A stretch of 64,000 bases of DNA from Lepidodermella squamata (GCA_047495785.1 JBLDXI010000019.1:1736001-1800000), one strand, 5' to 3'; positions 1-21,445 are shown, counted from the first letter of the stretch. Translations and numbers: made by a program. Notes: a model not told the origin generated them from the sequence alone.

Positions 1-2310
1 AAAGCTTACCAATGCAAATGAGAACACATAGCAGGCTTAATTCCTGGTAATTGCGTATTGTCTGAAAGAATTGATTGCCCACACGTCTGAGATGATTTAC
101 GATATGAAAATCTTCGCTGCTATTAGCGTTCATGGAATAGGTCCCACTTTCTTGATCCAACGACATATAATTGGGTGTTTGGGTTGACATGTCAAAACTT
201 AGAGATAATTGAGCTGCTAGGATCGGGAAGAATGCGTCCAGGTAAGCTAGCGTTCTCTCTTGCAGAGACATTTCTGTCGCACCTTATAAAATAATTTACG
301 TAGAAAGCAAATTCGATGTATTTATCGATCACTTACCTGGTAGCTCCCGAATGAACTCGCTGATTGCTGTGATGTAAGGAAGGAAAGCCGAAGCGCGGAG
401 ACTCGTGGCTTCGTATGGATCGATGTCAGATGGAAATACGATCTTAACTTCCAGGATAGGTTTGAGCTTCGAAGCCGCCGCTAGAGCTCTGTCAATCAAC
501 CAATCAGACGTAAAGTCTTGCTCTGGTTGTGAATGTGAACCGTCATAATTTGCGATGAGTATCTCGAAAGAGCCATTATCCTCGGCTGGAGCTGTCACCT
601 CGAAGATTTGCTCGCTTGAAGATGGGTCTTCAGTAGAGTAGGAGTACCTCCTCAAGGCTCCAGAATCTTCGCTAAAGGTCGAAATAAGGTTGTCGATATC
701 TCGCCGTGTCTCATCGGTGTACCGGCCGAAAGAAGTTTTAGACCTAGACATGCCTGCGGCAAGACATCTTTGGACACGGCAATAACGGCAGTTGGATGTT
801 ACTTCACAGAGTTCGAAACCATTTTCCAGCTCGCCAGCGGTAGGCCTTCGCTTGCAAACGTATTCAAGCCGATGCTGCTTTGAGCTGTACCGTCGAAAAA
901 AGAGCTTGCACCCCTCGCAAGACATAACCCCGTAATGGAAACCGGTACCTTTTAACATCAAATCCTTAGACAATCCATGGATTCATTTCGTAAAACTTAC
1001 AAGGAGAGCCGCAGATTTTGCATGGAATTTTGCCGAGGCCGAAATGGCAGTGTCTTTTGATCTCTTTCTTCTCAATCTGATTCGTGGTGGAGCGACCTTG
1101 TTTTGCTCGTTCCAGCACTTTCTTGCATTTAACCAAGCGGCAGGGGCGGCATTTTGCTATGTCGAAGTCCTCGCCGTGACCTCCATCGCATGCTGCTTCA
1201 TCAGACACGCCTGTCTCGTGATATCTCCAGTAAAATTTCTATGCATAAAATTACGGCAGTTAGTGGACTGAGCATCGGTTGAATAGGGATGTTTTACCTT
1301 GCAGGCGCCGCATAGAACGGTGGCTTGTAGTTGCTTGTCACGATGGACAGCAGACAAGGGGCGCATGCATACTTGGCATGAGAGATCAGGTATACTCATT
1401 AACTTTGATCTTTGAAAGCTTGTGGTAAAAACATAGATAAAGAGATATTTCAACTCCTGATGTGTGACAGACGAAAAGCGAAATGAGGGGAATATTGATT
1501 GAACTTTCACTACAAATATATCATGTTTCGTGGTTTAAAATCTATCCATTAATGAAGTTTCTTCTCCTGCGCGATCATGGAAAGGAAATGAAGAATAGAC
1601 TATGCCCTTTAAAGCGTGCTTCTGTAACAGTTTGAATCATTTGAGAAGAGTGTAATTTGAAGTTATTACGAGCTTCCAAACCCACCCCTACTACAAAATA
1701 CTATGATATTATTCAGCTGCATTAAAATACTACAACAATTATCAACGAGTACTCATTTATATAGAGGTCGGTTCCAGCTAGGAATATGGGTGGACATGAT
1801 AAAGAAAGCTGAAGCATATGCTGCTCGTAACTCATGATAAAACTATTCATCAAAAATGAATATGTAAAATAGGTGCTAGCTCATAAAATAGGTTAATTTT
1901 CAATCATATACTCGAAAGACTCTCATTCATCCTTGTACAGTCTGATTAGAAAAGCCGCCCAAAGACCTCTTGTTTCTTCCATTTATGTAGTAAGTTCTGA
2001 TGAAAGCAAAACACTTATTTACATAGGCAAAAAATGGCACAATAGAACCTGTTTGTATTCAACAACGAAACACGATCTAGCTATACGTCTTATGACAGCG
2101 GCAAGATTTTTCGGCCACTATTTTCCATTCATAAAAAAATTTGCAAAAAAACAGTATTTCATAATTTTTGTTACAATAAAGTTATGAAGCAACACCAACA
2201 GCCCTAGGTTTCTGCTATATCCCGAGGCTCAAGATTAGCTCGTCAGAACAATTCTACAGCATTTCGAGGGAAATACTGACGGGCACTGGCTTGAGCTAGA
2301 TTACGAAACA
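1..2310. repeat. Segmental duplication block 1a (homologous to ~15391-17270)
   Basis: Colinear nucleotide similarity including introns and upstream non-coding DNA, e.g. gcatagaggtcggttccagc-like and cggccactattttccattcataaaaaa-like tracts in both copies. Boundaries approximate. Confidence 0.85.
10..1399 (-). CDS. Two-DBD nuclear receptor, copy A (last exon lies beyond the left edge of the window)
   Basis: Exons 1399-1298, 1238-1001, 948-337, 282-10 with GT-AG introns of 59/52/54 nt. DBD1 CQVC-x18-CGACKKFYWR...C-x3-H-x8-CRPCRLVKC; DBD2 CKIC-x13-CEGCKLFFRR...CRYCRVQRCLAAGM; LBD signature FIRELPG...RTLAYLDAFFPILAAQ...QELSLLCVLI. Confidence 0.88.
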
Positions 2311-2705
2311 GCCATATCAACAAAATTTCCTTATCTCGACCAAATATGTTGACCGGTTCTGCCCGCGATAGGAAACCGCTAGCTTGCAATAGGATTTGGT
2401 ATTTATAGTTTTCAGTCCCTCAGGAAAGTTTGATTTGTTGCTTTAGAAATGAAGCTGACTCTGGCCAATAATACGTTGCTACGATTCACGTTTCTTGAAT
2501 GGCATTTAAGCTGTTACGTCTATGAACGGCACCTTGACTGACCGGGGAGGGGTTCCAGTCTAACTTGCACATCGTGCATGAAACCTCATATTAGTTAAGC
2601 CTAATGCGATTACCTCTGATGTTTATTCCGCTTAGGTATATTGAAAATAAACAAAATTTAAGATTAAATGAAATTCCTTCAGTCAAAGGTTCAGCCAAGA
2701 AATGT

Positions 2706-3717
2706 TCACTCAGAAGGCGCGATTAGTTCTGGCGGTAAGTTGTCGGCAATGAATTGCTCAAAATCAGCCAGCTGCTGCGGATCTTTGAAGTGATTACGCC
2801 AATCGCCAACTTCGCCTTTCCGAATGAATTCCATGTCCTTTCGGAAGATTCCAATTTTTTTGCCATGCGACCAGTTGTAGGAATCATTTTTCCTCATTTC
2901 ACCAACACTGGTCGCCTCTACGATACGAGTTATTGCCTCTTCATCGAGCTGCTTACCAAGAAATTGGGCAATTTTTCGAATCGCTGATCTGGCGTCCTGA
3001 AAAAATCTGTTTAGCACTGAGGATTATAATACTAAACTAGCCTACCTTTTTGATGTCTTCATATCGCAAAAGAAGAACAGGTTTTCCACTATTTGCGAAC
3101 TCGGCATACGCTTTTATGTGATCCGGATAAGGACCACATAAAATTTTTCCAGAAATAAACTTTCGCGCCCATTGCTCGAACGTGTCACTAGCTACCCAAT
3201 GTTCATTCGCCGTCGCTTTCATATGGTAGAAGTAGGAAACCGCAACATCTTTAGCATTTCGATAGATGTAAATCAACCGGCCGTTCAAGGTGTTTTTCGG
3301 TAGTAGCGCTGGTGGCAGATGCGTCATGAAAATGCGCTGGCCCGGCCTGGACGCTAGTTTCTCCAAAGCCGACGGATGAGGAGGTTTCGGAATTTCGAAC
3401 AGCATCATGTCTTCTGGCGGGTAGGGTTTGTCGAAATTGCCGGTTTCAACGAGGTAAACCATGTTATGCAGCCAGTGCGTGCCGCATTTTACGAAACTCG
3501 CCACCGTTATGTCACCTTGCCTGACTGGAAAGTCGTAAATCTGCGGCCAGTAAATTGGCATGAACGCGGGCAGCCAAAAGTTATTGAACAAAGCGATCGG
3601 AAAGCCTTCTTTGCTGTTATTCAGTGGAGAAAATGTCTCAGCAAACTTCCCTAACATTTTTGACATTTCCGCTTGGCTGGGGAGCTCTGCCATATTTCGC
3701 GAGGAAGTTTCATTCAT
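2706..3717 (-). CDS. Cytosolic PAPS-dependent sulfotransferase (SULT1-like)
   Basis: Two exons with a 49-nt intron at 3045-2997. 5'-PSB loop SFVKCGTHW, catalytic-His region FMTHLP, 3'-PB YRNAKDVAVSYFYH, C-terminal FIRKGEVGDWRNHF. Confidence 0.93.
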
Positions 3718-4361
3718 TTTCGTTGAAAAAGCACAATTTCAAAGAATTAAAGCGAATCACGCAGAACTGTATCATAAGTTATTAAAGTTTTATGGCCGGC
3801 TTATGAAGCGTTTTATACCCACCGAGTTAGGACAATCCACGCTTGGACAATCATTTATGAAAGTTTAATTATGTAAAGTTTCTGGCGGACGCTCAACGAG
3901 TGCAGAATGCTTTGTTCTAAGCGCGCTTTTTACTTGATGGCTACCTTGTCAGTTGCCATCAGACGTCGACTGCAGCGAGCGGAGCGTGGTTAAAAAACTC
4001 AAAATGCAAGAAATGTCATTATTTTTATCTGGAAGTGTAACGTGGTTCTATTACGGACGGAGTAATTTCGGACACTTTTTTAACATATTAATTTCTGTCA
4101 ACCCCGAGACTTCAGGATAAAATAATCCTTTATTTTAGGTTACCCGGGTTCCATTAAATAGTCAACGAAGTGCTACGCGTTATTTTAATTTTCAAAAGTG
4201 TGAAATAACTTTAAATAATCGTAGATGTTTTCTAAGTAATGTTTTCTCTCCTTGGCATCCCCCTGTGATGCCTTCATATAATATTATTATCCAAATGTCC
4301 ATAGCTGCTTAGTTAGTAAAACATATTATAGTTTAGGTTTAATTCACCATCTTTACCATTT

Positions 4362-6718
4362 TTAACGAGGCCAGAGGAAGATCAACCCTGATGACGTACC
4401 GGTTAACCACGCTAAAATAGCTAATGCCGTTGATTTCAGCTTAGCTTCGTCTCCAAAAGCAACTGAAACTAGTATTGCAGCCAAAAACATCGTGATCAAG
4501 TTAGCTGCTGAAAATCTTAATCGAACCAGCTCTTTCAACCGATCCTCCGGTCCGTCGACATGACGCAGGGCATAAGAAAACCACGAACTGATAACCAGAA
4601 GAAATCCATTGACAACTACAACGGGTCCGATCCAGTAGGTCTCTTCACTTGAGAGTACAGTCAACCGACGAGCTATTGTGTAAATGTCTGATTCAATATC
4701 GTAGGATTGTTCTACAATATGATCTTCAATTCGGACATTCTGCTGATCAATCATAAGCCAAGACAACAAGTATGCTACTCCACCCATGAAAAAAGTCAAA
4801 AACACCTTATTGGCGGTCCCTGAAGGCTCGCTAGCGATGATTTCCTTGAAAATCTCAGATGAGCTGGTCACCGATGAAGATTTCCTATTAACCATTGGCG
4901 TTACTAGACTGGATCGTCCATTGTTTGAAGTAGCTGCTACTATTGCAACGTTAGGTTTGCGAAGTGTCGCTCTCACTTTTTTAAGATTCAGACGGGAATG
5001 GAACAGTCGTCCGAAGAATACACTCTTTTTGAAAAATAATCTTGATTCGTGCAAGGATAATGCTCAATAAATCTTACTTGATAGATTGTGACGCCAAGGA
5101 ACGCAAAAATGCGAGTTGCGAAGTAAGCCACATCCGGCTTGACTAATTCATGAACTAGGCTTAGGAATATTGAGGTCAAACAGAGTGAACAACTGGCTAA
5201 AAATACAGCGATTGAAGGCGAGTCAAATTTTCGCCCGAAAGTCAGAAGTATAAAATGAGATGTAGCCGAGAGGCAATTAGCGGCAATCATTATCCATTGG
5301 AACTCTGCCGAGAGGTTCACCTTCACGTCCTTTTGAATTTTACTGTCTCTGGGAGGTTTTCCGTCAGCTGTTGTCCAGTATGGAGCCGCATATTTTTTCC
5401 GCACGGAGTAACTAGAGTAATTCTGCGCAGATGCATTAGCAGCTCTGCGGAAGGAGCTTAGAATCTGCTGTCCATTCGCCCTAGTCCACTGCACAGCGAC
5501 GAATAGGTCGTCATCAACTTCAAGTCGCGACGAATACCTGAACCGACCCATTCGTAATCCAATGTAATCCACTTTCGCCATGGATTCATTGACAAGTTGC
5601 ATCACCTCAGAAGGGTTTGATTTGTAATCTCCTATAGTGAGATTTACAGATGCCAGACTGTTCTCAGTATTTACTAGGCTTTGAACTGCTGCCAGAGCTC
5701 CGTCATGACACTGAAACCGCCTGTCGTAATCAGCCGGTTTAGTCCCTGGTTTCCCGCTCACTTCAGCCCATTTCATGTCAAAGCGACGATCGAACTCGGT
5801 GGTATCATAGCCAAGAGTTGTGGCTAACCCTGCATTATCAGGATCCTTCGATGACCAGCTAATCCAAAACGAGATGACATACTGCTCTAAAACCATTGCT
5901 TTCGAGCATTGTGGCGTAACCATGTCTGGTAAAGCTGATGGTTCTGTGTATAGAGCAAAGTATAAGGTGAACGCATAACGTGGGCCCTTCAACCCGAATT
6001 CATAGGCTTTGCAAAGGAACTTTAAAACCAGAGGTAAAGCTGAGATGTAAACATCAACGACTCGAACATCTTTCGCTAGTATCGTTTGCATAGTTGCATC
6101 TTCAATATCAGGGACTACCTCGAAAAATGGAACTTCAAACCCGTTAGCCAGTGCTTCTTTAACCATCATCTGACCGCCTATGTAGTCTGCGTCGTTCTGG
6201 GTCGAACACAGGAGGCCAAATCTGTTCCATCGACCTATTTCTCGTATGAATCTGAGCCGAGAGTAAAGCATCGCTTCTGAACCAGCTCTTGTTCGGTACA
6301 TGTTAGGGTAAAGTTTCCGGTTGCTGGTCAAACTTGGGCTGTTACATCCAAAAGCAGAATGAACCATGTTCAGGTTGGGTATCACTGGTCCCAAGGATTT
6401 GCAACCTCCGGCAAACAATGCTCCGACTAGGATAGGCGCAATAATCGCGTCCTGTTTTTGATTGATAAGAAAGTTCACCACTGCTTGAACTGCAAGGTTG
6501 CTCCCAGGGCCTTCGTCGCGATAGATTGGCATTAAATTGTAGCCTGGAATGAGCTTTCGGGCGTTGGCTGCCTCGATCGCTATATCAACTTCGATTAGGC
6601 AAGCTTCTCCTTTCTTAGGTGCTTCTCCAGTAAAAGGGAGTAAAACCAGCATCGACATATTTTTCATCGCCGTTGCCCCGGCTAATAGAATCGACAAAAC
6701 AAAAATATCTGAAATCAT
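4362..6718 (-). CDS. Divergent class C GPCR, GABA-B-receptor type (Venus flytrap + 7TM, no Cys-rich domain, no C-tail)
   Basis: Signal peptide and ANF/VFT motifs (EAANARKLIPGYNL, SPSLTSNRKLYPNMYRT, GRWNRFG, FLCKAY). A 53-nt intron at 5077-5025 joins TIYQ|SVFFGR in TM3. Seven hydrophobic segments, ending GLIFLWPR*. Confidence 0.87.
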
Positions 6719-7185
6719 GATGCTTCAAGTTCGTTCCCCGATGAATGAACGCGTTCGCTCATTTCAAATACGTGTCCTACAAGCAATAAAATACAGGAAG
6801 ACACGCACGCCGCCATTCTCTTCCGGTGCAGGTTCGATTGTTGTGTTTTATGTTCAAGAGGTCGGAGAAACACGTATAGGTGTCTCTCAAATCAGCAAAA
6901 AGCCTCCTACCGCAAATACATCCTGTTTTTCATTGGAACAAAGCGAGATTTTTTATTTAGGCACAAAGGCATAACAAAATTTAATTCAAATGGCCAGTGT
7001 ATTGGTCTCGAAAGTCTCTAACCAGCGAGTGGACGACCTTGCTGAAGGACGCACACCGGCCCGGTATTCGAAAGATATGCGATCGATACGCATCGACCCC
7101 GGACCTCAAATTTGCGATCAATTCGATGAACTGAGAGTGGCGAAATTCGTCGCCCTTCAAGCATCTCATCAACGCCACGTGATAT
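6381..7185. repeat. Segmental duplication block 1b (homologous to ~17306-18110)
   Basis: Near-identical sequence covering the GPCR 5' end, the intergenic spacer and the nuclear-receptor last exon. Confidence 0.9.
6981..7185 (-). pseudogene. Orphan 3' part of the last exon of nuclear receptor copy C
   Basis: Encodes YHVALMRCLKGDEFRHSQFIELIANLR...GHLN*, identical in protein to the C-terminus at 17909-18110. Homology stops abruptly at ~7185 and no upstream exons are present. Confidence 0.88.
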
Positions 7186-9087
7186 AACCTCAATTGTGGT
7201 TCGCTTCCAAGTCACGGCGCGTGTGTAACTGAGCAGAGCACTTAACCCCTACTGCTCCGGCTGTGTGGCAGCAATACCCTTGGCCGCCGATCCTTCTCGT
7301 CTGAACTAATCACCTCGGTCAGGTCTAGGTCGGTCGGTATGGTGCCAATGGAGTTTGCAGTGTCGCACGGTGCAAAAGTTCTATGGTGCAAAAGATGGAA
7401 GCGGACGCGGACAGCAATACCCGTTGATCTGCGACATCACACCCTCTGGTTCACACCCTATACGGCCCAGACCGGCACGGGCACTGCCGAACACCGCCGA
7501 ACAACGTGGTTAAAATTAGAGCCGAACAAAGGGGTCAAATCGAATTGTACTGACTTGTTCGGCTGTTTTTGGAGAAAATTCAGCTATTTTTGCATCATTT
7601 AGTTCAGCGGTGTTCGGAGAAAAAGCGTGTTCGGACTTGTTCGGACTCGCAGTCATCAAATTGTTCGTTGTTCTTCGCCTGCTTAATTTTTGTCACTGTT
7701 CGGGGTTGTTCCCTTCAGAATGTTCGGACTAGTTCACCGTTTCTACTCCTACGGCAGTTTTGTAATAAAATATCAATTTTTCCTCCGCTTTCGATTTATT
7801 GAAATGAGCATTAAGCGATTTGTAATAAATAATAAATCCATGAGTATCAAGAGGGTCATAGATGACCACAAATCACAGATAATTATTACAGGAATCATAA
7901 TTGCATCATAATTATTATTATTTGCTCGACCTTGTAGTTCCTCTTCAATGTCTTCTTCAGTGTTATTGATCCGATTCATCTCCATCGTCACACGCAGTCA
8001 TGCATTGCCTTCATCTCCGCCACCATACTTTGCAGCGCCCACCTAATTCGAGTCAGTTTTCAGTTTTCGCCATCGGCTTTCAGATTTCGCGATACGAATT
8101 CCGAGGTCTTCGATTATCTTGATGGGGTTGCTGCTTAGCGATAGCCGACTCTAAATGAAACACTGTAATACTAATCATCGAGGAGTACAGCTGTTGGTTT
8201 CCCATCTCAAATACCGATTGAAGTGAGATGCGGCGTTGCATCGTTGGCTATTCATCGTCTTGTTGATCGTGAGACCATTCTGATCGCGTCGCCAATATTA
8301 CATCTGATGAAAAATCAAGGCAAAAAGGATTAAATTTGCTGTAAAAAAAATTTCCTTCACAGTTGATGAGCTTATCAGTATTTCCTGACTAATTGGGAGC
8401 TTCTGCCTAGTCAGGCTAGGGTCCTTTCTTTTTTCTAGGATTGAATTTTTTGAAGTGCTATTTAAGGCAGAAGATTGGCTTTTGAATTGGGTTTTTCAGG
8501 GTTACCTTGCCCCCGATTGAAAATTCGAAGCTTGGCATCGGCAAACAATTCAATTTATTCAAAATTATGGGGGAAACGTCGCTATTTATTATTAGGATAA
8601 GGCCAATTTTGCTAGAAATTTGAAAACATTTTTGGTCTATTTTATCTGTTCGCGGATATTTAATTTTCTATTCTGAAATTCCATTTTATTTAATTTAAAA
8701 CAAAATAAAACGGAATTTCAGAATGAAAAATCAGTTGTCCGCGAGCAGATGAAGTGGATCCTTTGTAAAATCATGAATTATTTCCTTCGAAAGAGCACGG
8801 CCGCACGCAATGCAAGAAACAGACAGACCTCTACCGGCCTAAATGGAGCTTCGCATGAGGCCGGAAAATATAGTTTAAAATCACTGTTTCGACTACACTG
8901 TAAAAAAGTTCGCTATTTAGCAATTGGTATTTTGGACGGCCGGTTATTAAGAATAAAACATAAAACAATTTCGAATCGCTAAAACCAGAAAGCTAATTAA
9001 AATAATAGGTGATCGGGGGTTATTTATCCTGAGTAACATAGGGCAAAAGGGGGTTTAGGGTCTCGAAAAATATAGCACTAAGAAAAC

Positions 9088-9853
9088 GGTCGCCTGACAT
9101 TTGAGTACCGCGACACTTGCGCCGCGACACATCCGCCCCGACAATTTAGTACCGACATTTGCGCCCAGCTTTAACTTGCGCCCGACGACACTTGCGCCCA
9201 ATTACAAAAATCATGAATTTATTTCAACTTGCGCCCAAGCTGACGACACTTGCGTCCAAAACACTTGCGCCCCGGACTCAACCGTCGCCGAAATAAAATG
9301 ACTAAATCGATAGAAACGAGGGAAGAGTGGAGGCTGAAAATCTGATGGCCAATTACTTTTTTTTATGCTATTTTCGGGTCCACATTTTACCTGTTATTTC
9401 GCCGACTTCCATATTGAGGGGTAACGCTAACGCTAACAAAAACGCTAACGAGAGACTATATAACTCAGAGGAAGTCGGGGAAGTAATCCTTGGGGTTCTG
9501 CGAGTTGTGGACCAGTCGACCCCAAAATGGCATTGAAAAATGGAAATTTTCAGCAAAAGTGAAATGATGCGAGGCAAAGAAATCACGCAAACGTTAACAG
9601 CGAGTAAATTCGAAATATAAATGGGCGAAAGTGTCGCAGGATTATTGGGCGCAAATGTCGTGGGCTGAACTCAAGTGTCGCCGGATGCATATCTGTCGTG
9701 TGTGCAAATGTCGCCACTGAATATTTTAATTTGGGCGCAAATGTCGCGTACCCAAGTGTCGTTTTTAAAACGGGGCGCAAGTGTTTTTGGGCTCATTTGT
9801 CGGGGCGCAAGTGACGGGGCTTAAGTGTTGCGGTACTCATTTGTCGGCACACC
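9088..9853. mobile_element. MITE with 8-bp TSD and ~15-bp subterminal tandem motifs, nested in the 7466-12184 element
   Basis: TSD AAGAAAAC at 9080-9087 and 9854-9861. Imperfect TIRs GGT...GACA..TGAGTACCGC.ACACTT. GACACTTGCGCCC-type motifs on the left and their reverse complements on the right. Confidence 0.85.
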
Positions 9854-10012
9854 AAGAAAACCGGTCTTTCATACTTTTTACACAAAACCCAAAATTTTGG
9901 TAATCATCGCCTCAAATTTCATTCTCTAGTAATTAGAAGCTTCAATTTAAATTTTTTGACCAAGTAGAAGTCCTAAATAATACCCAAGTAAAAGTCGGCC
10001 AAGTAGCGTCTA

Positions 10013-10161
10013 CAGGGTGGCCAAAAAATTCCGCAGAGCAGAGCGGGAATTCGATGCGCATCATTTTAATGAGGAGTTTCGAGAAATTGAGCAGTTCCAT
10101 TAGCAAAAGAATGCTTGAAATTCTTCGAATTCTTAAAACTCCTCATTTTTTGGCCACCCTG
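10013..10161. mobile_element. Tc1/mariner-type MITE (149 bp)
   Basis: TIRs CAGGGTGGCCAAAAAA / TTTTTTGGCCACCCTG, flanked by TA on both sides. Confidence 0.85.
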
Positions 10162-10621
10162 TAAATAGCTAACTTTTTTTATAGTGTGGTCTGATTATAT
10201 GATTTCATTCATTAAATAGGGAAAAAATGTTGACCATTTGAATTAACATTATACCTAGATTCAAAAGAGTTGTGATTTACTGGCAAAATGAAATTTTATC
10301 GAATAGTTTCCTACCTCAAATAATTACCCCATCGAATAATAATTCAAATGGATATCGCGTCCAAAGATCAACAGTAGCCGGCCTCAAATAATAGCCACAA
10401 CTCGCCTGAAATAATAAGGAATCAATAAGAAGACTGCGGAATCTCTTTTGGAATAAAGTTTGGGTGGTCCAACCTGGCAAGCCTGAGGAGCTACTCATAT
10501 CAACTATTGGGCTTGATGGAAGTGATCATACCCCATCGAATAATAATGGGGTCTTGCCGTGATTTGTTTGTTATTTTTTTTGATATCATTCATTTTTTCC
10601 TTTTAAATATTTGGCTCCGAA

Positions 10622-10819
10622 CAGAGATGAGAATGGGTCAAAACATCGACCCAGGACCCGAGGAGACCCATGCCGGGAGGACCCAGGACCCAACTTTTAT
10701 AACCCAAGTGACCCATAAATCTAAATTTCGTAATTTTGAAGCGGATTACTCGCGACGTTGTTTTTATGCATATCACGCTTCATTCTCATCGGCAATCGTC
10801 AAAAAGTGCGAAAAATTCT
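10622..10819 (+). mobile_element. Truncated left half of the hAT-type MITE seen complete at 29142-29547
   Basis: ~200 bp near-identical to 29142-29340, starting CAGAGATGAGAATGGGTC. Confidence 0.88.
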
Positions 10820-12533
10820 AATTATAATTATCTTAAAATTATTATTATCTAGGAAATTCCGCTAGAAAGTCAAGCCATAATTTTCTGAAACCTATTTTGA
10901 CCCTATTTTATTCGAGGGCTATTTTTCCTATACTCGAAAAATAGAGAAAAAATGGGGCAATTTTTCGAACAGGCAAACGAGGCCGGCAATTACTAATCTA
11001 GAAACGTCATATTACCATGGCGTGGGGTAACTTGGCCGGGGGGTATCTAGGCCGTAAAAGTCGCCTTCTGGACGATTTCACGTGAAGAAAAACGTTTTTT
11101 TCACGGAGTTTCTTTCATAGGAACATTCCTTGCCACCTGACCTACAACTTCCTTAGTTCGTTTTTAAATTAAAGAGAAAGGTCAGTATAAACTCGTTCAT
11201 TTGCACATTTTTTCTAGACTCGCATCATCAAGAGGACGTTTTATTCCGAATTCAAGGCCTAATTCGTAAAATTCATCTATTCATGGCGAGTTGGAATTTA
11301 GATTCCTACATACTTTTTAGCGGTTTTCAATAGCCCAATAACGACTGCCATTCATACGAAACTTCCGAGATTCTTCACGAAAAAAATTCCTCCGACGAAA
11401 AAACGAGGAAATTAGACAAGCTCAATTTCGAAATTCGAACTGGTAATTTAAAATAGAGCATTAATGATGAGCCTGATTCGGCTTACCTGTGCAACTGATA
11501 CTGGCGAAATTGTAGAATCAGGTTGTTGCCGCAATCCGACTTGATCCATTTCGTCACGGTAGACTGATTTCAACGCCAAATTCGGATTTCAAATCCGGCC
11601 TCGCTGTTTTGGGTTCGGAAAATAGCTGATAGCTTAATACAACTACTCATCTACCTGTCATAGGCGTTATCACAAAGTTATTGCACTGAAAAGGGTAGGT
11701 CCAAGTTGCTTCTATCGTGAAATTGCTTGCGCGGAGAAGTTCTCTAAACATACAGCTTCTTATTTCTGTGTGTATAGATGAAAAATAAATGAAATATCGG
11801 ACAAAATGGTGTCGTATTCAAAAATAAAAGCTTCGTAATCACTTTTCAACAGCTTTTTCACATTTATTTAGTGTTTTTCACAAATTTCACCGCCAGGAAC
11901 AACAGGGAACATTTTCTTTCCTGTTGTTCGATTTTGTTCGCTATGCTTCGTTACGTTTCAGATCAAGGAACAACTCCGAACATTTATTTTCTACTAGTTC
12001 GCTGTTGTTCGCCGTACTTTTACACGTTTAAAATCAAGGAACAACATTGAACAAACGCTAGCAGTTGTTCCACTTAGTTCGGAGTCTTCGATCGACATCC
12101 GAAAACTGTTCGGCCCTGTTCGTCGCTGTTTTTCTTCAAAAAACGTTGTTCAGCGTTGTTCGGCAGTGGCCGTGCCGGTCTGGGGGCGCAGCAACCCGAC
12201 ATCCTCTGCCTTCGGCCAGTAATAGCCACTAGAATAACACTTGAGTGTCTGTGATAAGTATGACTTACTATGTGCTACAATCATGCATATGATAATTGCA
12301 CGCCAATAAAGTTTAAGTTTTTTTTCAAGTTTTAATTACTTTTCCACCGAAATTGCGAGCTTTTTTATGATTCAGCTGAACATCTGCGACCCATGACGTT
12401 CCGCTCTTTTTTCGCGAGTAGTCTTAAATTTCTTAAATTATGTCTATGGATTTGCTGGATAAAATACAGAAAATTCGCCAAGCCCCACTTTTCACTTGTT
12501 TCCTTATATTATATGCAAGTTTTGAAAACTCAT

Positions 12534-14237
12534 TTATTTTAAAAGTAGTAATTTCTTAAAATAACAAATGTATTGCTTAATAAAGTCTTTCCCTAAAGGA
12601 TGGGCAATTGTAACGGTGCTAATGAGCAGTCGATATGCCTGCGATCCAAGACGAAGATTGGTCATCAAGTTGTTGAACTGAGAAATTCGAAATTCGTCGC
12701 CATTCAGGCATTGCCTCAATGCATCGGTGTACCTTATTCGCCATGCATGGATCTTCTGATTATCCGAAAGCGCATCACTACCTGCGAAACTTGAATTTAC
12801 AAGGCCGTAAAATGATGGATGACCATCAACTTACCAGCTCCGAACCATAGCAAGGCGACCAGGATACAAAATTCTGGGAAAGTAGACACGGTGCTGACGA
12901 ACTGATTGCCGACCTGTCTGAGATGGTATTCAACGACAACGTCTTCACCGCACACTGCATTTCTAGATTGCGTTCCACTTTCGCGATCGAGGGAGAAATA
13001 GTTAGGGGTCTGAGTCGATACGTCGAATTTGAGGGAATATATCGCAGCCAACATTGGGTAATATGAATCCAAGAAAGCTATCATGCTATCATGAACAGGA
13101 ATTTCAACCGTTCCTTTATAACATGTATGGAAATTAAATAAAAACATTGGACTAGAGTGAAATTACCTGGTAAAGCTAGAATAAACTCTCTGATTGCCAT
13201 TACAGATTCTAAGAGTGAAGAGCTTCTGACCTGTGTCGCCTCCTCCATGCTCGTCCCAGGAGGAATAACTATTTTCTTCTGTAGAAATATCAGCCTAAAT
13301 AAGCTCGTCTATGAAAGCTGAATGGATAAATACTTCAATAATTGGCTCCAGCTTCGCAGCGGCCGAAACAACAGAGTTTGTCAACCACTCAGTGCTGACA
13401 GAATCCATGGTATTCAGAGAAGAATTGCTAGTGACCATGATTTCCAATGAACTGTTATCATCAGCTATACTTGTTACTTCAGTAACGCTCAGTGGGTTGC
13501 CGAACGGTGAACAGCTTTGTGAAAGCTCTCCTGAAGTCTCGAAGTAAGTCATCCTCTCGAGTTTCCGTCGAGTAAGGTCAGTATATCGACCAAAAGAAGT
13601 CTTCGACTTGTCCATCCCAGCGGTGATGCAGCTCTGAACGCGGCAATAGCGGCAGTTGGAAATAACTTCGCATAGCTTTCCGGATTTGGAGCCTTGCTGT
13701 TTGCAAGCGTATGGCTTCCGATGTTGCTTCGATATGAATCTTCGGTAGAATAGCTTACAGCCCTCGCAAGACATTACTCCGTAATGGTAGCCGGTACCTG
13801 AAAGACATAGCTAATGCTCGTATCGAGAAATCTAATCAATTATTCAAACTTGGCGAACCGCATACTTGACATAGAATTTTGTTAAGGGCATAGCTACAGT
13901 GCCGTTTTGTTTTTTTCTTGCCACGAGTATTTGTTAGTTGAATTGAAGTTGATTTTAACCCTTCAAGGATTGGTTTGCATCTTGCTAGGCGACACGGTCG
14001 GCATTGCGTAATATCGAAATCTTTGCTGTGATCCATGTTGCACCTGTCGTTAGGAAATCCAGTTTCGCTGTATCGCCAGTAGAATTTCTAGAAACAAACT
14101 TAAAATACAATTAATTTGCAGCTCAACATGAATACCTTGCAAGCACCGCATATATTGGCAGTTGGTTTGCCTTGCAATGTGCCTAAAATAGGCCTGCTAC
14201 AGGCTTCGCATGTACCGGTTTCAACGCTGTATGCCAT
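12534..14237 (-). CDS. Two-DBD nuclear receptor, copy B
   Basis: Six exons; first introns 14135-14088, 13849-13798 (weak GTTTGA donor), 13333-13279. DBD1 CEAC-x16-CGACKKFYWR...CNMDH-x8-CRPC; DBD2 CQVC-x13-CEGCKLFYRR; LBD FILALPG...EFCILVALL...RISQFNNLMTNLR...HPLGKDFI. Confidence 0.85.
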
Positions 14238-15088
14238 TATCAGTATAAATTTCACTAGAAACAATTCCAAAGGCTCCACTCTCCCCAATTACTTAATCAG
14301 TTAGGTGATGAGAGCCCGCTTCCTTGAGTAGGTTATTGCTTGCGTGTGATGTTGGAATCATAGAATATTTCTTGGTGCATTCATCCCAAGTTTTCTGAAT
14401 ACACTGTTAGGGTAGGTAGGGACTTATTAGGAATGTTCTTGTGAAGTTGAAAGGTAAACACGTGAGGCTTGCGAGTTGTTTCTTAATGATGCGAATGTAA
14501 AAAAAAACAGCTCACCACTCAGTTGCGTGACCCCTCGGCAAGAAACAAGCACAAATATTAGGTCGAGTATCAGAGTGCGATCTTGGATCCTCGAGCTTTC
14601 GGCTTTCGGGGAGCTGCCGGGGATGGCCGAACATCTCCCTGTAAGTCGCACACTGTTAAGTCCTGCTTTTTCGCGGCGCCAAATAACTACCATTCAAAGG
14701 TGTAATTGCAATTTGGACGCTTGAAAACAAAGTACACGAATTTCGGACAACTTTTTTTTGACAGAATCGTTAGAGTAAGACAAAAGACGCTCAGCATTTA
14801 GAGCCAGCCGCTTCCAGGGCGGCTACATGCTTTTTGTTCGTAAAAACGTAAAGATGCGAAAATCTTCGTTGAACAATTGATTATACGGAAGTCACCTTAC
14901 AGCCAAGTTTTCCTGCGCAGTATACAGTATACTCTCCTTCTTCCCTCTCTGATCTTTACAATCATTGAAATTCTTAGATGAAAATTGCAATATCGTTTTA
15001 TTAAATTTATCGCTTCGCGGGAAAGCGAACCCATGCAAAAAATGCATATCTCCTGTTCTTCATTCTGGCATGGCATACAGAATTTTCT

Positions 15089-16270
15089 TCAATGTTCGAC
15101 ATCATAGCAGACATAACTCCTAATATAGTCTTTCAAGAGGGAATGGGCGACGTGATCGAATCCAGAACATCTGCCGGGAAGCGACCGCCGGAGTGATCGG
15201 AAAGCTGGAACACCAATACGAAGGCTACTCATCAGCTCGTGAAACTGCGATAGCCGATACTCATCCCCATTCAGGCAGCGGACAATGCAAACTTGTAACG
15301 ATCATGCAGCATTGTCAGCTTTTCATTCTTTGAGAGAGTTTTGCTACCTGGGAAAAATTGTGAAGTTGGGAATTATAGAGAATTAATATTCACAGCTTAC
15401 CGATACAAATCAGAACGCATAGCAGGCTTAATTCCTTGAAGTTGTGCATTGTCTGAAAGAATTGATTGCCCACTCGACTGAGATTATTTGCGATAAGAAA
15501 ATCTTCGCCTCTGGTTGCTTTCCAAGAATACGTTCCACTTTCCTGATCCAGCGATATATAATTAGATGTTTGGGTTGACATGTGAAAACTGAGAGAAAAT
15601 TGAGCTGCTAGAATCGGGAAGAATGCAGCTAGCGTTCTGTCTTGCAGAGACATCTCTGGCGCACCTTATAAAATAACGTATACGTGGAAAGTAATTTCAA
15701 CATATTGATCGATCAACTTACCTGGTAGCTCCCGAATGAACTCGCTGATTGCTGTAATACGTAAGGAAGGAAAGCTGAGCTGCGGACTCTCGTGGAGTAG
15801 GAGTACCTCCTTAAGGCTTCAGAACTTTCGCTGAAGGTCGATATATTAGCTAGTCGATGTCCCGCCGTGTCTCATCGGTGTACCGGCCGCAGGAAGTTTT
15901 CGACCTAGACATGCCTGCGGCAAGACATCTTTGGGCACGGCAATAACGGCAGTTAGATGTTAATTCACAGAGTTCGAAGGTCGCTAGTTGTAGGTATTCG
16001 CTTGCAAACGTATTCAAGCCGATGCCGCTACTTTCCTAAATTTAACCAAACGGCAGGGGCGGCATTTTGCTATGTCGAAATCTTGGCCGTGCCCTCAATC
16101 GCATGCTTCATCAGACAATCCTGTCTCTTGATATCTCTCCAGTAAAATTTCTATGCAAAAATTATAGGCAGTTAAGTATTGAGCATCAAGTTGAACGTTG
16201 ATGTTTCACCTTGCAAGCGCCGCAAAGAATGGTGGCTTGTAGTTTGTCATGATGGACAGCAGACAAGGGA
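15089..16270 (-). pseudogene. Pseudogene duplicate of nuclear receptor copy A
   Basis: Colinear with 1-1360 but lacks the start region, has internal deletions (equivalents of ~410-635 and ~880-1115, the latter removing DBD2 finger 1), a 9-nt deletion in the LBD exon and frameshift/stops in the last exon. Confidence 0.88.
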
Positions 16271-17305
16271 CCTCAATGAGTAATATTGATCGAACTTTCA
16301 CGACAAATATCATGTTTCGTGATTTGAAGTCATTAAAGAAATTTCTTCTCCTACGCGATCATGGACTTATGGAAACGATGCCCTTAAAAGCTTGCTTCTG
16401 AAACTGTTTGAATCATCTGAGAAGAATGTAATTTGAAGTTTTTACGGGCTTCCCAACCCACCACTACTAGAAGCTGCTATAATATTACAATAAGCTGCAT
16501 TAAAATGTTACAACAATTATCTACGTGTGCTCATTTGCATAGAGGTCGGTTCCAGCAATCAGCTAGGGAGAATATAATAAAAAAAGCTAACATATGCTGC
16601 TCGTAACTCAGGATAAGACATTTAAACAAAAACTAATTAAATGAGAATACATAAAATAGATGCTAGCTCGTAAAAAAACAGGTAAATTTGTAATCATTAT
16701 CTTACATGAAAAACTCTCATTGATCATTTACAAATTGTACAGTTTCTAGTTTCTTCTATTAAGTAGGTTCTGATGTATGGAAAAAACTATTTACATGGGC
16801 AAAAAATGGCATAATAGAACACGTTTGTATTGAACAACTACACACACGCTCTAGCTACGTCTCACAACGAGTACAACGGCGAGATTTCTTCGGCCACTAT
16901 TTGCCATTCATAAAAAACATTAGCCAAACAAAGTTATGAAGCTTCAAGTAAAAATCTAAACAATTATTGATAAAAGCCAAACTAATAACTTGGGAATGAT
17001 AAGAAAGGCCAGGATTGAGACGATAAGAGCATCGAGAGTCATTTTCGATCAATGATTTGAAGCAAAATTAATTGCGCTCATATTCTGATGCTGATGATCG
17101 CAGCTTCAGATGGCCGGAAAACTGTCGAATACCGAGTTGAGCTTGTTCTAGCTCTAGGTTCTGCTTTTACTGCTTGTACGATACCCCAAGGCTCAAGATA
17201 AGCTAGAGTCAGAGAGGTTCTACATCATTTCAATTGAAACGCAATGGCTTGAGCCATATTACGAGACAGTCTCATAAAACTATGAACTATATGTTCAGGT
17301 TAGGT

Positions 17306-17650
17306 AGCACCGGTCCCAATGATTTGCAACCTCCGGCAAACAATGCTCCGACTAGGATAGGCGCAATAATCGTGTCCTGTTTTTAATTGAAAACAATCAT
17401 CACAGCCTGTACTGCAAGGTTGCTGCCTGGGCCTTCGTCGCGATAGATTGGCACCAAATTGTAGCCGGGAAGGGGCTTTCGGGCATTAGCGGCCTCGATT
17501 GCTACATCAACTCCGATTAGGCAAGCCTCTCCTCTCTTCCTTTCTCTCCTCTCCTTCTCCAGTCAGAGGGAGCAAAACCAGTATCGACATATTTTTCATC
17601 GCTGTTGCCCCCGTTAATAGAATCGACAAAACAAAAAAATATAATACCAT
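17306..17650 (-). pseudogene. 5' fragment pseudogene of the GABA-B-like GPCR at 4362-6718
   Basis: Matches 6381-6718, with an inserted CT-rich tract at ~17527-17560. Truncated after about 110 codons. Confidence 0.85.
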
Positions 17651-17908
17651 GATGCTAAAAGTTTGTTCCTTGATGAATGAGCGTGTTCGCTCGTTTCAAA
17701 AACTTGCTACAAGGAAAATACAGGAAGACACGCACGCCGCCATTCTCATCCGGTTCAGGTTCGATTGTAGTGTATCGTGTTCAAGAGGTTGGAGAGACAC
17801 GTACGGCTGTCTCTCAAATCAGCAAAAAAGCCTTCCACCGCAAATATATCCTGTTTCTCATTGGAACAAAGCGAGATTTTTTATTTAGGCACAAGGGCAT
17901 AACAAAAT

Positions 17909-20239
17909 TTAATTCAAATGGCCAGTGTATTGGTCCCGGAAGTCTCTGACCAGTGAGTGGACGACTTTGCTGAAAGACGCGCACCGACCTGGTATTCGAA
18001 AGATATGCGATCGATACGCATCGACTCCGGACCTCAAATTTGCGATCAATTCGATGAACTGAGAGTGGCGGAATTCGTCGCCCTTCAAGCATCTCATCAA
18101 CGCCACGTGATAATACCGCTGTAGCTCTGAGATCTTTCCAGTTTGTGGCAAGCTATTGCTACCTGAAATCAAGACTCATGAAAAGGACTTCAAAATAGAG
18201 CGATCAAAAACAAACAAGTTCCTAGGCCAATAATAGCGCACAGAAGGGCGAATTCTTGAAAATTGAAAACCGTCTGCCCAAGTTGGTAACCAACAGCGCG
18301 AAGGTGATTTTCGATGCGGAAATGGTCGAGATTTACCATGGCACTAACGCTCCACGTACCGCTCGGCCGATCGAGGGAGAGATGATTCGGAGTTTGAGTG
18401 GTCGCGTCATAACCGAGTGAAAGTTGAGCCGCAAGGATTGGGTATAATGCATCGAGATAGGCCACAGTTTTCTCGCCAATTGAAAGCTCGCCCACTCCTG
18501 CGCATAAAATATGCAGATTGACTGAAAAACCCTTAAACTCCAAAGTGTTTAATGAAGCCTGAAAATAGGGTTCCAATCATTATTTTGCTCAATAATGACT
18601 TTTCACTAATTTATTGAAATGTTTGTTCTAACCTCCCAATCAAAGATCAAACGCTCACCTGGTAGAGCGGAGTAAAATTCGCCGATTGATTTCAGATGAG
18701 TGAGACACGCCAAGCCCTTCGTTATGGCAATATCTTCCGTAGACATTCCCCTCGTAATGACAATATTCACCTGAAAATTTAGCATTGCAACTCCATTGTT
18801 GCTATTTACTTCAAAATTGTACCTGAAGAATTGGCGCTAGTTTAGCTGCAGCGGCTGACACCTGGCCAATCAGCCAGTCTGGGTCAAAATTTGACGTTGA
18901 ATAGGATGTTGAGAGTTCTATCTCTAAAGAACCGTTATCAGCTGCAGGAGCCGTCACTTCGATAATTTCACTCGAAATTTCACTCGAAGAGGCCGATGCG
19001 TCGTGACCCAGACTCGAATAATTATCGTCCGAATGAGCGGAGGTCGACGTGCTGGGCGATGAGTCATTAAAAACTGGGTCACCGCTATTCGAGTGAACGC
19101 CCGAACTAGTAGAAGGCCCTTGGTGGCTTGAAGAAGAATGGTCTTCATTGGAATTTCGCTTAATCAGCAGCCGAATTTCAGCCCGCGTTCTAGGACTGTC
19201 TGCATCTTCTTGATTTTCAATAAATTTATCGATTTCGTAGCGAATCTTGTCGGTATACCGGCCATTTATCACCTTATCCTTGTCCATGCCAGCGGCTAAG
19301 CAACGCTGTAGTCGACAATGGCGGCAGTTCGACGACGGTTCACATAATTCTTGACCTGATGATGGACTAAGTTCGTTGTTATTGTTGCTTTTGACTTGAT
19401 AACACACGTATTCCAAGCGATGCTGCTTTGACAAGTAACGGCGGAAGAACAGCTTACAGCCTTCGCATGACAAGACGCCATAATGAATGCCGCTACCTGA
19501 ATTAGGAAATGACAAAATCTTTTGTACTTTGGTACACAATCGTCAAACGACCAGCAAAATTTCCAAAAAAGTACGCTGAACCTTGTCGCCATTACTTGGA
19601 TTTCTGGTTATTGATAAAAAAATTCCTAATAATTTAAAATTTTCGATAATAATTTTCGAGCCGATTTAAACTTTAGTTACGCAGTAATCACGAATTGCTA
19701 CTTATAAATAAAAAAGTTAATTTAATATTATTTAATTCAATTGATAATTTCCTTTAATTTTTTGATTTTTTTCTACTAATAATTCTACTAAGATTTTATT
19801 TAAATTCCAGGCCAAACAAAAGCGGCTAAGAGACATTCAAGTTGGAATTACTTACTGGAAAAACCACAAATTTTGCAGGGAATTTTGTGAAAATTAATCT
19901 GCCGATGTCGCTGCCGCCGTTTCACCAGTTTATTCTCTGCCGCTGCACATCGGGACTGTGGCTTTCGATCGGGCAGTACTTCCTTGCATCGAGCCAAACG
20001 GCAAGGCCGGCATCTCGTGATTTCAAAATCAGCTGGATGATCGCTCGAACAACTTTCTTTGACATTTCTCTCGCCATAGCGCCAATAGAATTTCTGATGG
20101 TTAATAAAATAATAAAAGAAATGAAAGAATTCGCAAGCATTACCCTACAAGCATTGCATATGGGCGGTTGACTTTTTTCATTTGGCCGAACGATAAATGA
20201 GCGATGACAGACAGAGCAAATATCATCGGGTTTAGACAT
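17909..20239 (-). CDS. Two-DBD nuclear receptor, copy C
   Basis: Six exons. DBD1 CSVC-x16-CNACRKFYWR...CSSDH-x8-CRPCRLARC; DBD2 CKIC-x13-CEGCKLFFRR; Ser-rich hinge; LBD FYSALPG...KTVAYLDALYPILAAQ...QEFALLCAII...HSLVRDF. Confidence 0.88.
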
Positions 20240-21445
20240 CTAAATTTAAAAAATTAGGACAAAACCCTATTACCCTGCCAATAATCAGTAATCGATTTCT
20301 AATCAATCACTGATTTCTCGAATTAATCGATTGTTTTATGTAAATGAGCCTCGCTACTCGAGGTGTATTTAGCATGGTCACAGGTGATCAGGGATCTCGA
20401 TATAACTCCATTACAAACAGGGTGTGTGATCCGCGTGAACGCGTCGTAACGGAATATTTAAAGGAATTATTCGAAAATGAACCTTTTAGATGCAAAATTC
20501 GAGTTCCGTTAAAGCAAAGTTTGGTAAAAGTTTTATACTCGCATGCTGAATTTTTGCAAAAAATAATAAATGACGACGGAAATAACTTTTTGCTTGTGAA
20601 CTTCGATACGATTCGAACGCATGCGGTGGATTGCTGTGGGGAAACGTGCGCCCGCACGAACGTGAGTTGTAAATTGCGCTCACCTCATTTCAGACGTTTT
20701 GCGGAGCTAAATTGCTCATTCATAAGCTGCTTTACCTGATATAGAGTTTAGCAATATCATGCTTAATTCTTCTAATAAATTAATTCTTATTTTAGGAGAA
20801 TTAAGGATTAGAAGGGTCTAGGAATAATTAATTCAAAAGAGACAACTGCGTTATAAAATTTTATTTAAGGAAAACATGAAACTTACCTGTATTAAAATAG
20901 CGCACTTGAAACGCGACGTATTTGTCATTTGCTGATTAACCTGCGAGGGAGTTGCGAATTAATACTAATTAAGAGCCCAGGCAGCTTTCGACATGGCTTC
21001 AGCGCCAGGCAATAAATAGGATGAAAATGTATTCTTGCAAAAAAATATCCAGATTTTCAGGAAGACGTTGTCCTTGTTTTTTAGCGATGTGTTCGACTTT
21101 AATTGGGTGACGCAGTTATAGAAGTGAAAAAACATGCATAAGCGGTCTACTCCACAGCATCATTTTTTCATGCGCCCAGCCTCTCGTGAAATTTTACTAT
21201 GCTGTGATAAAATGAAAAAAAAATCGATAAACCAAGTGTGCACTTTATTGACCTTATTAGGTTACTTGTAAGCACACGTTTTTGTCCGTAAATCGACAGG
21301 AATTAAGAACGTGTCGTGATCTATAAAAAGCCAGCAGCAATAAAACAAGCCTCTCTCAAATGATATCAGCGTTTATTACAAATGATATAAATAATTCTAC
21401 TTCGAACGACTGAAAAACACAGTAATAAACCTGGCACAATGTCAG

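Follow-up and report, generated by a model that had tools for sequence, protein, structure and literature searches.

The 64,000 nucleotides of Lepidodermella squamata DNA analysed here (GCA_047495785.1 JBLDXI010000019.1:1736001-1800000; hereafter the window) carry three co-oriented, intron-containing genes of identical layout on the minus strand. They were recognised by six-frame reading and splice-site inspection and are referred to as genes A, B, and C. The exon reading supports that each gene encodes, in a single reading frame, a module resembling a nuclear-receptor (NR) DNA-binding domain (DBD), hereafter module 1, followed by a further DBD (DBD2) and a C-terminal region. We consider it probable that the three genes are paralogous, transcribed, NR7-like receptor genes with two DBDs, whose zinc modules are both remodelled; the transcript-like evidence for this comes from gene C. 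Receptors with two DBDs (2DBD-NRs) are a little-studied class. In the present genes, both modules are altered in ligand spacing and in the residues of the reading helix, yet both are constrained. They may therefore serve as a natural experiment on the limits within which an NR DBD can be rebuilt and on the purpose of a second DBD.

Gene architecture and splicing

The gene models were derived from the three minus-strand reading frames and from the splice sites, and profile searches were performed exon by exon. Gene A (1-1399, minus strand, as are all receptor exons below) comprises more than 411 codons, and its 3' end lies beyond the start of the window. Exon 1 of gene A (1298..1399) contains the start codon and finger 1 of module 1, C-x2-C-x18-C-x2-C-K, in which the P-box begins as CGACK; it is followed by a GT donor at 1297. 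Exon 2 (1001..1238, 238 nt) encodes KFYWRY, the second metal site C-x3-H-x8-C-x2-C-x4-C, a 34-residue linker, and the first C-x2-C of DBD2. Exon 3 (337..948) encodes the remainder of DBD2 (CEGCKL and C-x15-C-x5-C-x2-C), a GM-x5-SFGRYT extension, the hinge, and the start of a region resembling a ligand-binding domain (LBD). The core of this LBD-like region is encoded by exon 4 (1..282), which is truncated at the window start.

Genes B and C are complete, with six exons each. Gene B (12534-14237, exons 14237-14136, 14087-13850, 13797-13334, 13278-13167, 13113-12835, and 12781-12534) encodes 480 codons with the P-boxes CGACKK and CEGCKL. All its introns are GT..AG and 48-55 bp long, and its frame closes exactly at 1443 nt. 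Gene C (17909-20239, exons 20239-20144, 20093-19856, 19496-18823, 18770-18659, 18497-18216, and 18162-17909) encodes 551 codons with the P-boxes CNACRK and CEGCKL.

This gene structure is directly supported by features shared among the three genes. All 13 inferred introns have GT..AG ends and most measure 48-59 bp, with two introns of gene C reaching 161 and 359 bp. Exon 1 spans 32-34 codons in each gene, with the ATG 6-8 residues ahead of C-x2-C-x16/18-C-x2-C-[K/R] and a phase-0 GT donor at its end. Intron 1 cuts the P-box of module 1 after its fifth residue (CGACK|K in A and B, CNACR|K in C). Exon 2 is exactly 238 nt long in all three genes and has the same order of elements as described for gene A, with 34-36 residues separating the second metal site from the first C-x2-C of DBD2 at the exon end. 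This exon thus encodes, in one open frame, both finger 2 of module 1 and the leading Cys pair of DBD2. The remainder of DBD2 opens exon 3 in every case, and its P-box is invariably CEGCKL. No A/B domain precedes module 1 in these genes. Because this pattern is kept in three paralogs with saturated synonymous sites (see below), it is not due to chance. The P-boxes listed in the initial annotation (CGACKK, CGACKK, and CNACRK for the first domain, CEGCKL for the second) were recovered exactly by the exon reading, and its remark that the first domain is hidden in the open reading frame (ORF) track is explained by the splitting of module 1 by intron 1.

The splicing of gene C was directly supported by two sequencing runs covering 15300-20300, namely X1 (2015, available as contigs and provisionally labelled 'RNA?') and X2 (DNA). 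Within gene C, X1 depth was confined to exons; intron 2 (19642-19808) and the intergenic DNA had no coverage, whereas X2 covered the entire region. The X1 contigs joined position 20093 to 20144, skipping 50 bp with CT..AC ends on the plus strand, i.e., GT..AG on the minus strand. This joint corresponds to intron 1, which lies inside module 1. They also joined 18160 to 18214, skipping 53 bp (cut shifted by +2), which corresponds to intron 5. In addition, two loose contig ends, at 18775 and 18821, ran into the neighbouring exon exactly as predicted for intron 3 (18771-18822). Of the junctions for which the initial annotation had proposed an RNA check, three in gene C (introns 1, 3, and 5) were thus borne out by transcript-like contigs. 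As exon 2 carries parts of both modules in one frame and the gene C contigs contain the exon 1-exon 2 joint, the two modules are assigned to one mRNA. Of note, X2 also contained a second form of gene C, which skips 346 bp of intron 2 (19497-19855) and whose exon 2 differs by ~10%, mostly at synonymous positions. This form represents either a strongly diverged second haplotype or a very close paralog.

The two zinc modules and their conservation

DBD2 was identified directly. Pfam zf-C4 (PF00105) matched exon 3 of genes A, B, and C with expectation values (E) of 3.5e-13, 5e-8, and 1.8e-12 (50.2, 33.7, and 48.0 bits, compared to a cut-off of 21.1), and the zf-C4 DBD that characterises the NR superfamily is thus present in all three. 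The closest solved structures in the PDB were ROR-gamma (1.2e-12) and NR1D1 (4.6e-11), followed by PPAR and RAR. A word search with gene C exon 3 returned nothing at 1e-5, and the DBD region alone returned a single 172-aa zf-C4 fragment. On the strength of the profile matches, the assignment of DBD2 as an NR DBD is solid, and the domain is recognisably NR1-like. Finger 1 of DBD2 has the canonical spacing C-x2-C-x13-C-x2-C when read by eye across intron 2, which is in phase 1; gene B reads G-S-P-S-T-G-Y-H-Y-G in this region. The recognition helix C-E-G-C-K-L-F-F-R-R is kept. After the DBD, an extension follows that consists of GM, five residues, and S-F-G-R-Y-T (A and B) or I-N-G-R-Y-T (C). The five-residue spacer in front of the grip box is that of 2DBD-NRs, and the published grip-box sequence R-x-G-R-Q-[PS] is matched at G-R only. 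Since its reading helix still has E, K, R, and R and the grip-box extension is present, DBD2 would be expected to bind a half-site similar to AGGTCA that is extended on the 5' side, and it may act as the main reader of such sites in these receptors.

Finger 2 of DBD2 is C-x10/15/19-C-x5-C-x2-C instead of the canonical C-x5-C-x9-C-x2-C. It lacks the usual sixth Cys five residues past the fifth and has instead the conserved stretch L-C-E-x-x-S-N-C-R-[YH]-C, with a conserved Cys five residues before the seventh. The enlarged D-box loop may alter the dimer geometry. This dimerisation loop is two to four times the usual length (sites 677-946, 13526-13795, and 19195-19494, minus strand), a feature that the initial annotation does not mention.

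Module 1 contains eight ordered presumed metal ligands, which are identical in A, B, and C. Its first loop has 16 or 18 residues (13 in the canonical domain), and its second site is C-x3-H-x8-C-x2-C, in which the sixth Cys is replaced by an invariant His. The helix reads C-x-A-C-[KR]-K-F-Y-W-R; the P-box Glu is lost and a Trp is gained, and the K/R and R are invariant in the three genes. The module ends with C-R-P-C-R-L-x-x-C, which resembles the C-R-[YH]-C-R-[VL]-Q-x-C of DBD2. Counted from its final Cys, module 1 is separated by 34-36 residues from the first Cys of DBD2, or by ~27-29 if seven residues are taken as the end of the domain.

A zf-C4 profile of our own was built from 11 fetched zf-C4 ORFs. 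DBD2, used as a control, scored 48.6-52.3 bits against this profile. The second half of module 1 scored a weak 5.3-6.8 bits, which was reached by 10, 3, and 3 of the 500 shuffles for the three genes, and in gene C it aligned collinearly and in register over profile positions 24-61. Local alignment of this half with the corresponding half of DBD2 gave z values of 3.4-5.1. As a lead only, a language-model comparison of exon 2 residues 1-45 gave zf-C4 clusters as its three best named look-alikes (0.81-0.84). An NR derivation is therefore probable for the second half of module 1, whereas its first finger is NR-like by position, Cys pattern, and P-box only. Thus, the description of the first domain as an NR zinc finger held, weakly, for the second half, whose alignment is in register, but not for the first finger, which is unrecognisable beyond its Cys pattern. 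For module 1 as a whole, descent from an NR DBD appears likely to us.

The synonymous sites among A, B, and C are saturated, with a proportion of synonymous differences (pS) of 0.66-0.87 (0.84-0.87 in exon 2). The corresponding proportion of non-synonymous differences (pN) was 0.23-0.34 in DBD2, 0.29-0.37 in exon 2, and 0.45-0.55 in exon 1, which is the least constrained part, with 28-41% identity among the paralogs. Constraint was also evident at a more recent time scale. When the exons of gene C in the window were compared to the second haplotype or strain, 18 of the 24 listed differences were synonymous (P ~9e-8, expectation 0.23). In the module-1 part of exon 2, eight synonymous and two non-synonymous differences were counted (P ~2e-4), and all zinc ligands were unchanged. 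Purifying selection thus acts on module 1, and this synonymous excess with the ligands untouched indicates that the module is a maintained coding sequence and not a decaying relic. From these divergence values, A, B, and C are old duplicates under purifying selection. The genes had been described as a fast-evolving, tandemly expanded group, and this description was not confirmed, as the paralogs are old and selectively constrained and other genes lie between them. A recent tandem burst was likewise rejected because of the saturated synonymous sites.

Comparison with known receptors and alternative readings

Published 2DBD-NRs have the P-box pairs EACKK and EGCKG (or EACKG) in NR7A and LPCKS and EGCKK in NR7B, whereas those of the nematode NR7C are variable. 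Their zinc spacing is canonical 'with very little exception', and their DBDs are 17-22 residues apart; the highest gene number given for a species is seven (Aphelenchus avenae), and no member from Gastrotricha is included (PMC10497141). The closest resemblance was to the 2DBD-NRA/NR7A receptors of Spiralia and amphioxus (Wu & LoVerde 2007, 2023; PMC1810520, PMC10497141), which also have tandem zinc modules upstream of a single C-terminal receptor region. The module 1 helix, xACKK followed by F-[FY]-x-R, corresponds to the published E-A-C-K-K-F-[FY]-x-R. In DBD2, finger 1 (CxxCG.[PS]S.G.H.G) corresponds to the published CxVCGAPSSG.HFG, EGCK. is likewise followed by FFRR, and five residues again separate GM from the GR-containing grip box. 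In contrast to NR7A, the present genes have GACKK or NACRK together with EGCKL in place of EACKK and EGCKG, they lack an A/B domain, and their module 1 is not detected by Pfam. Moreover, the canonical NR7 spacing C-x2-C-x13-C-x2-C / C-x5-C-x9-C-x2-C is found neither in module 1 nor in finger 2 of DBD2, and the inter-DBD spacer, 34-36 residues when counted between Cys residues, exceeds the published 17-22, by a margin that is uncertain because the domain boundaries used in that paper are unstated. GACKK, NACRK, and EGCKL are all absent from the published table of 2DBD-NR P-boxes, in agreement with the earlier claim that both P-boxes differ from the known pair.

The nematode NR7C receptors (PMC10497141) are similarly lineage-specific and divergent, with several copies per genome and highly variable P-box pairs, but none of their listed P-boxes equals those found here, and their pre-grip spacer has eight residues instead of five. 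ROR and Rev-erb (NR1F, NR1D), the best solved relatives of DBD2, share CEGCK.FFRR and the GMSR....FGR extension; however, they have a single DBD, a canonical second finger, and a Gly at the P-box position that is Leu here. A precedent for the replacement of a Cys ligand of finger 2 by His is the CHC2 motif C-x6-C-x9-H-x2-C of parasitic flatworm receptors, which according to the authors occurs in no 2DBD-NR (PMC10497141); there, the His occupies the seventh position, compared to the sixth here. No DNA target of 2DBD-NRs is reported in PMC1810520 or PMC10497141, and a search of the literature since 2022 on expansions of 2DBD receptors found nothing relevant. Taken on sequence comparison, there is moderate support for genes A, B, and C representing a variant form of the rare two-DBD class, with P-boxes new to the published table.

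Several results weigh against this reading. Exon 1 scored no better than shuffled sequences against our zf-C4 profile, and Pfam zf-C4 matched neither exon 1 nor exon 2 when these were taken singly. Exon 1 of gene C alone gave a sub-threshold match to Pfam GATA (PF00320; E 0.05-0.11, 12.6-13.5 bits compared to a cut-off of 26.8). No structure in the PDB matched a profile of exon 2 at E up to 10, and an exhaustive search of 1.84 billion proteins with a profile of the exon 2 alignment returned one match, a five-fold repeat protein that was judged spurious. AlphaFold modelling of exon 2 alone from an alignment of 3-4 sequences was uninformative (predicted local distance difference test, pLDDT, 46.5), and a scan of JGI metagenomes with the exon 2 motifs revealed no relative. 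The compact LBD of the initial annotation matched no profile either, as the LBD-like exons had no match to Pfam Hormone_recep (PF00104) at E up to 10, exon by exon, and a PDB profile search with them yielded no nuclear-receptor chain. By eye, the published LBD (Ti) signature was matched at 3, 5, and 3 of its nine specified positions in A, B, and C, respectively. Regarding the transcripts, the exon 2-exon 3 joint of gene C is not among the joints listed and is supported only by the lack of intron 2 in X1; the evidence is limited to gene C; and the 'RNA' label of X1 is a guess, its contigs carrying variant letters of a second haplotype or close paralog that are also present in X2.

The AlphaFold model of the LBD core exon, again built from 3-4 aligned sequences, was unusable (pLDDT 50.8), a Foldseek search with it found nothing, and language-model look-alikes of the LBD exon showed no consistent family. 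On visual inspection, F-I-R-E-L-P-G / A-T-E-M-S-L-Q-E-R-T-L-A-Y-L is reminiscent of the signature of LBD helices 3-5, and gene B carries F-I-K-Q-Y-I, which resembles the activation function 2 (AF-2) motif. From its position and this motif-level resemblance, the C-terminal region may adopt a ligand-binding fold.

As to module 1, the order of its elements is kept, i.e., the Cys pair, the loop, the C-x-A-C-K-K-F-Y-x-R helix, and the four-ligand second site ending with C-R-P-C-R-L-x-x-C. For this reason, we regard descent from the first 2DBD-NR DBD as the most likely origin of module 1. The invariant His would then complete a presumed Cys3His zinc site, the module would fold around two zinc ions, and, lying ~35 residues upstream of DBD2, it could add a further contact to nucleic acid with changed specificity. 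Given the loss of the Glu and the gain of the Trp in its helix, the binding site, if any, would be expected to differ. The new DNA targets proposed in the initial annotation are putative. That module 1 still binds DNA specifically is possible, with somewhat more doubt than confidence on our part. More tentative still, and rather unlikely, is the proposal that it is a working, re-engineered NR zinc domain, with its larger first loop, a Cys3His second site, and the helix G/N-A-C-K/R-K-F-Y-W-R, that reads a motif unlike known half-sites. Together with the changed D-box loop of DBD2, the genes would then belong to a phylum-specific, dual-specificity radiation with far more members than the seven 2DBD-NRs that are the published maximum for a species.

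Module 1 could instead be NR-derived without reading DNA, as a zinc-stabilised or zinc-free N-terminal module of what are functionally one-DBD receptors; it might then make protein contacts, mask DBD2, or stand in for the missing A/B domain. The lost P-box Glu, the absence of the canonical HYG core from finger 1, the non-canonical length of both loops, and the weak constraint on exon 1 (pN 0.45-0.55), which the DBD profile does not recognise, are all consistent with this, but we regard it as unlikely because all eight presumed ligands and the K/R and R of the C-x-A-C-[K/R]-K-F-Y-W-R helix are invariant in the three genes, and because recent differences are strongly biased towards synonymous ones (8 versus 2). 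An origin outside the NR superfamily, with an unrelated treble-clef or zinc-ribbon fold (e.g., GATA-like C-x2-C-x16-18-C-x2-C) fused to a one-DBD receptor, would account for the finger 1 spacing of 16-18 residues, which is that of GATA fingers, for C-N-A-C and the GATA match in gene C, and for the failure of any profile search to recognise exons 1 and 2 as zf-C4. However, the GATA match falls short of the cut-off and is confined to one gene, the GATA core residues are absent, and an NR-type helix and a second finger follow; the GATA reading of finger 1 was rejected on the first of these grounds. The K-K-F-Y-W-R after the fourth Cys resembles the K-K-F-[FY]-x-R of NR7A, the second half is collinear with the NR DBD profile and ends with C-R-x-C-R-L-x-x-C like DBD2, and the two modules, the short linker, and an NR1-like DBD2 with a PSSG-type finger 1 reproduce the known 2DBD-NR layout. 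The non-NR origin is therefore quite improbable.

The gene models themselves could be in error, with exon 1 a chance ORF, translation beginning downstream, and a complete module 1 never made. Exon 1 is short (32-34 codons) and poorly conserved (28-41% identity), and contigs rather than raw reads were available. On the other hand, a transcript-like contig joins exon 1 to exon 2 precisely at the predicted GT..AG, and all three genes, although saturated at synonymous sites, retain the ATG, the two pairs of Cys, and a phase-0 donor directly behind C-x-A-C-[K/R]. Such an artefact is therefore barely credible.

Receptor copies, neighbouring genes and other features

The window was searched for further receptor copies by tblastn with each exon and by self-comparison. 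A dead copy of gene A with ~84% DNA identity was found at 15110-16269 (minus strand). Its start and first Cys pair are gone, and finger 2 of module 1 is interrupted by an in-frame stop. Of two internal deletions, one has taken out the linker together with finger 1 of DBD2 and the other the hinge. Compared to gene A, its synonymous divergence (dS) is 0.39 and the ratio of non-synonymous to synonymous divergence (dN/dS) is 0.26, which suggests that it lost its function some time after the duplication. X1 depth over this copy (15300-16635) was ~1, rising to 12 at 15801-15967, owing to either weak transcription or cross-matching with gene A. The cluster thus offers three diverged intact genes and a dead copy as an internal control for work on DNA binding and zinc coordination.

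A degenerate, orphan last exon was located at 6984-7217 (minus strand), with 90% protein identity to the last exon of gene C and one in-frame stop. It lies in a duplicated block, in which 6366-7184 matches 17291-18112 with 88% identity and which holds the 5' end of a gene similar to class-C G-protein-coupled receptors (GPCRs) together with the last receptor exon. The copy at 6366-7184 has an intact GPCR-like gene beside a relic of the receptor exon; the copy at 17291-18112 has an intact gene C beside a relic of the GPCR piece. That opposite halves are intact points to reciprocal loss after the duplication. No additional receptor copies were detected beyond 20239 when each exon was compared to the whole window.

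The cluster is not a clean tandem array, since A and B are separated by two unrelated genes, also on the minus strand. One is a two-exon cytosolic sulfotransferase gene at 2709-3717 (Pfam Sulfotransfer_1, 1.7e-29 and 1.4e-16). The other is the large class-C GPCR-like gene at 4365-6718, which has a long extracellular-type ORF and a 7tm_3 match of 29.5 bits, below the cut-off of 33.5; its 576-aa N-terminal ORF had no Pfam match. Rfam and tRNA scans of the window gave no matches. A 194-bp repeat occurs at 10622-10814 and 29142-29335 in the same orientation and with 96% identity, and may be a small mobile element. Finally, a long gene is present in three diverged tandem copies (64-70% DNA identity) at 31270-36701, 39328-44779, and 62015-64000.

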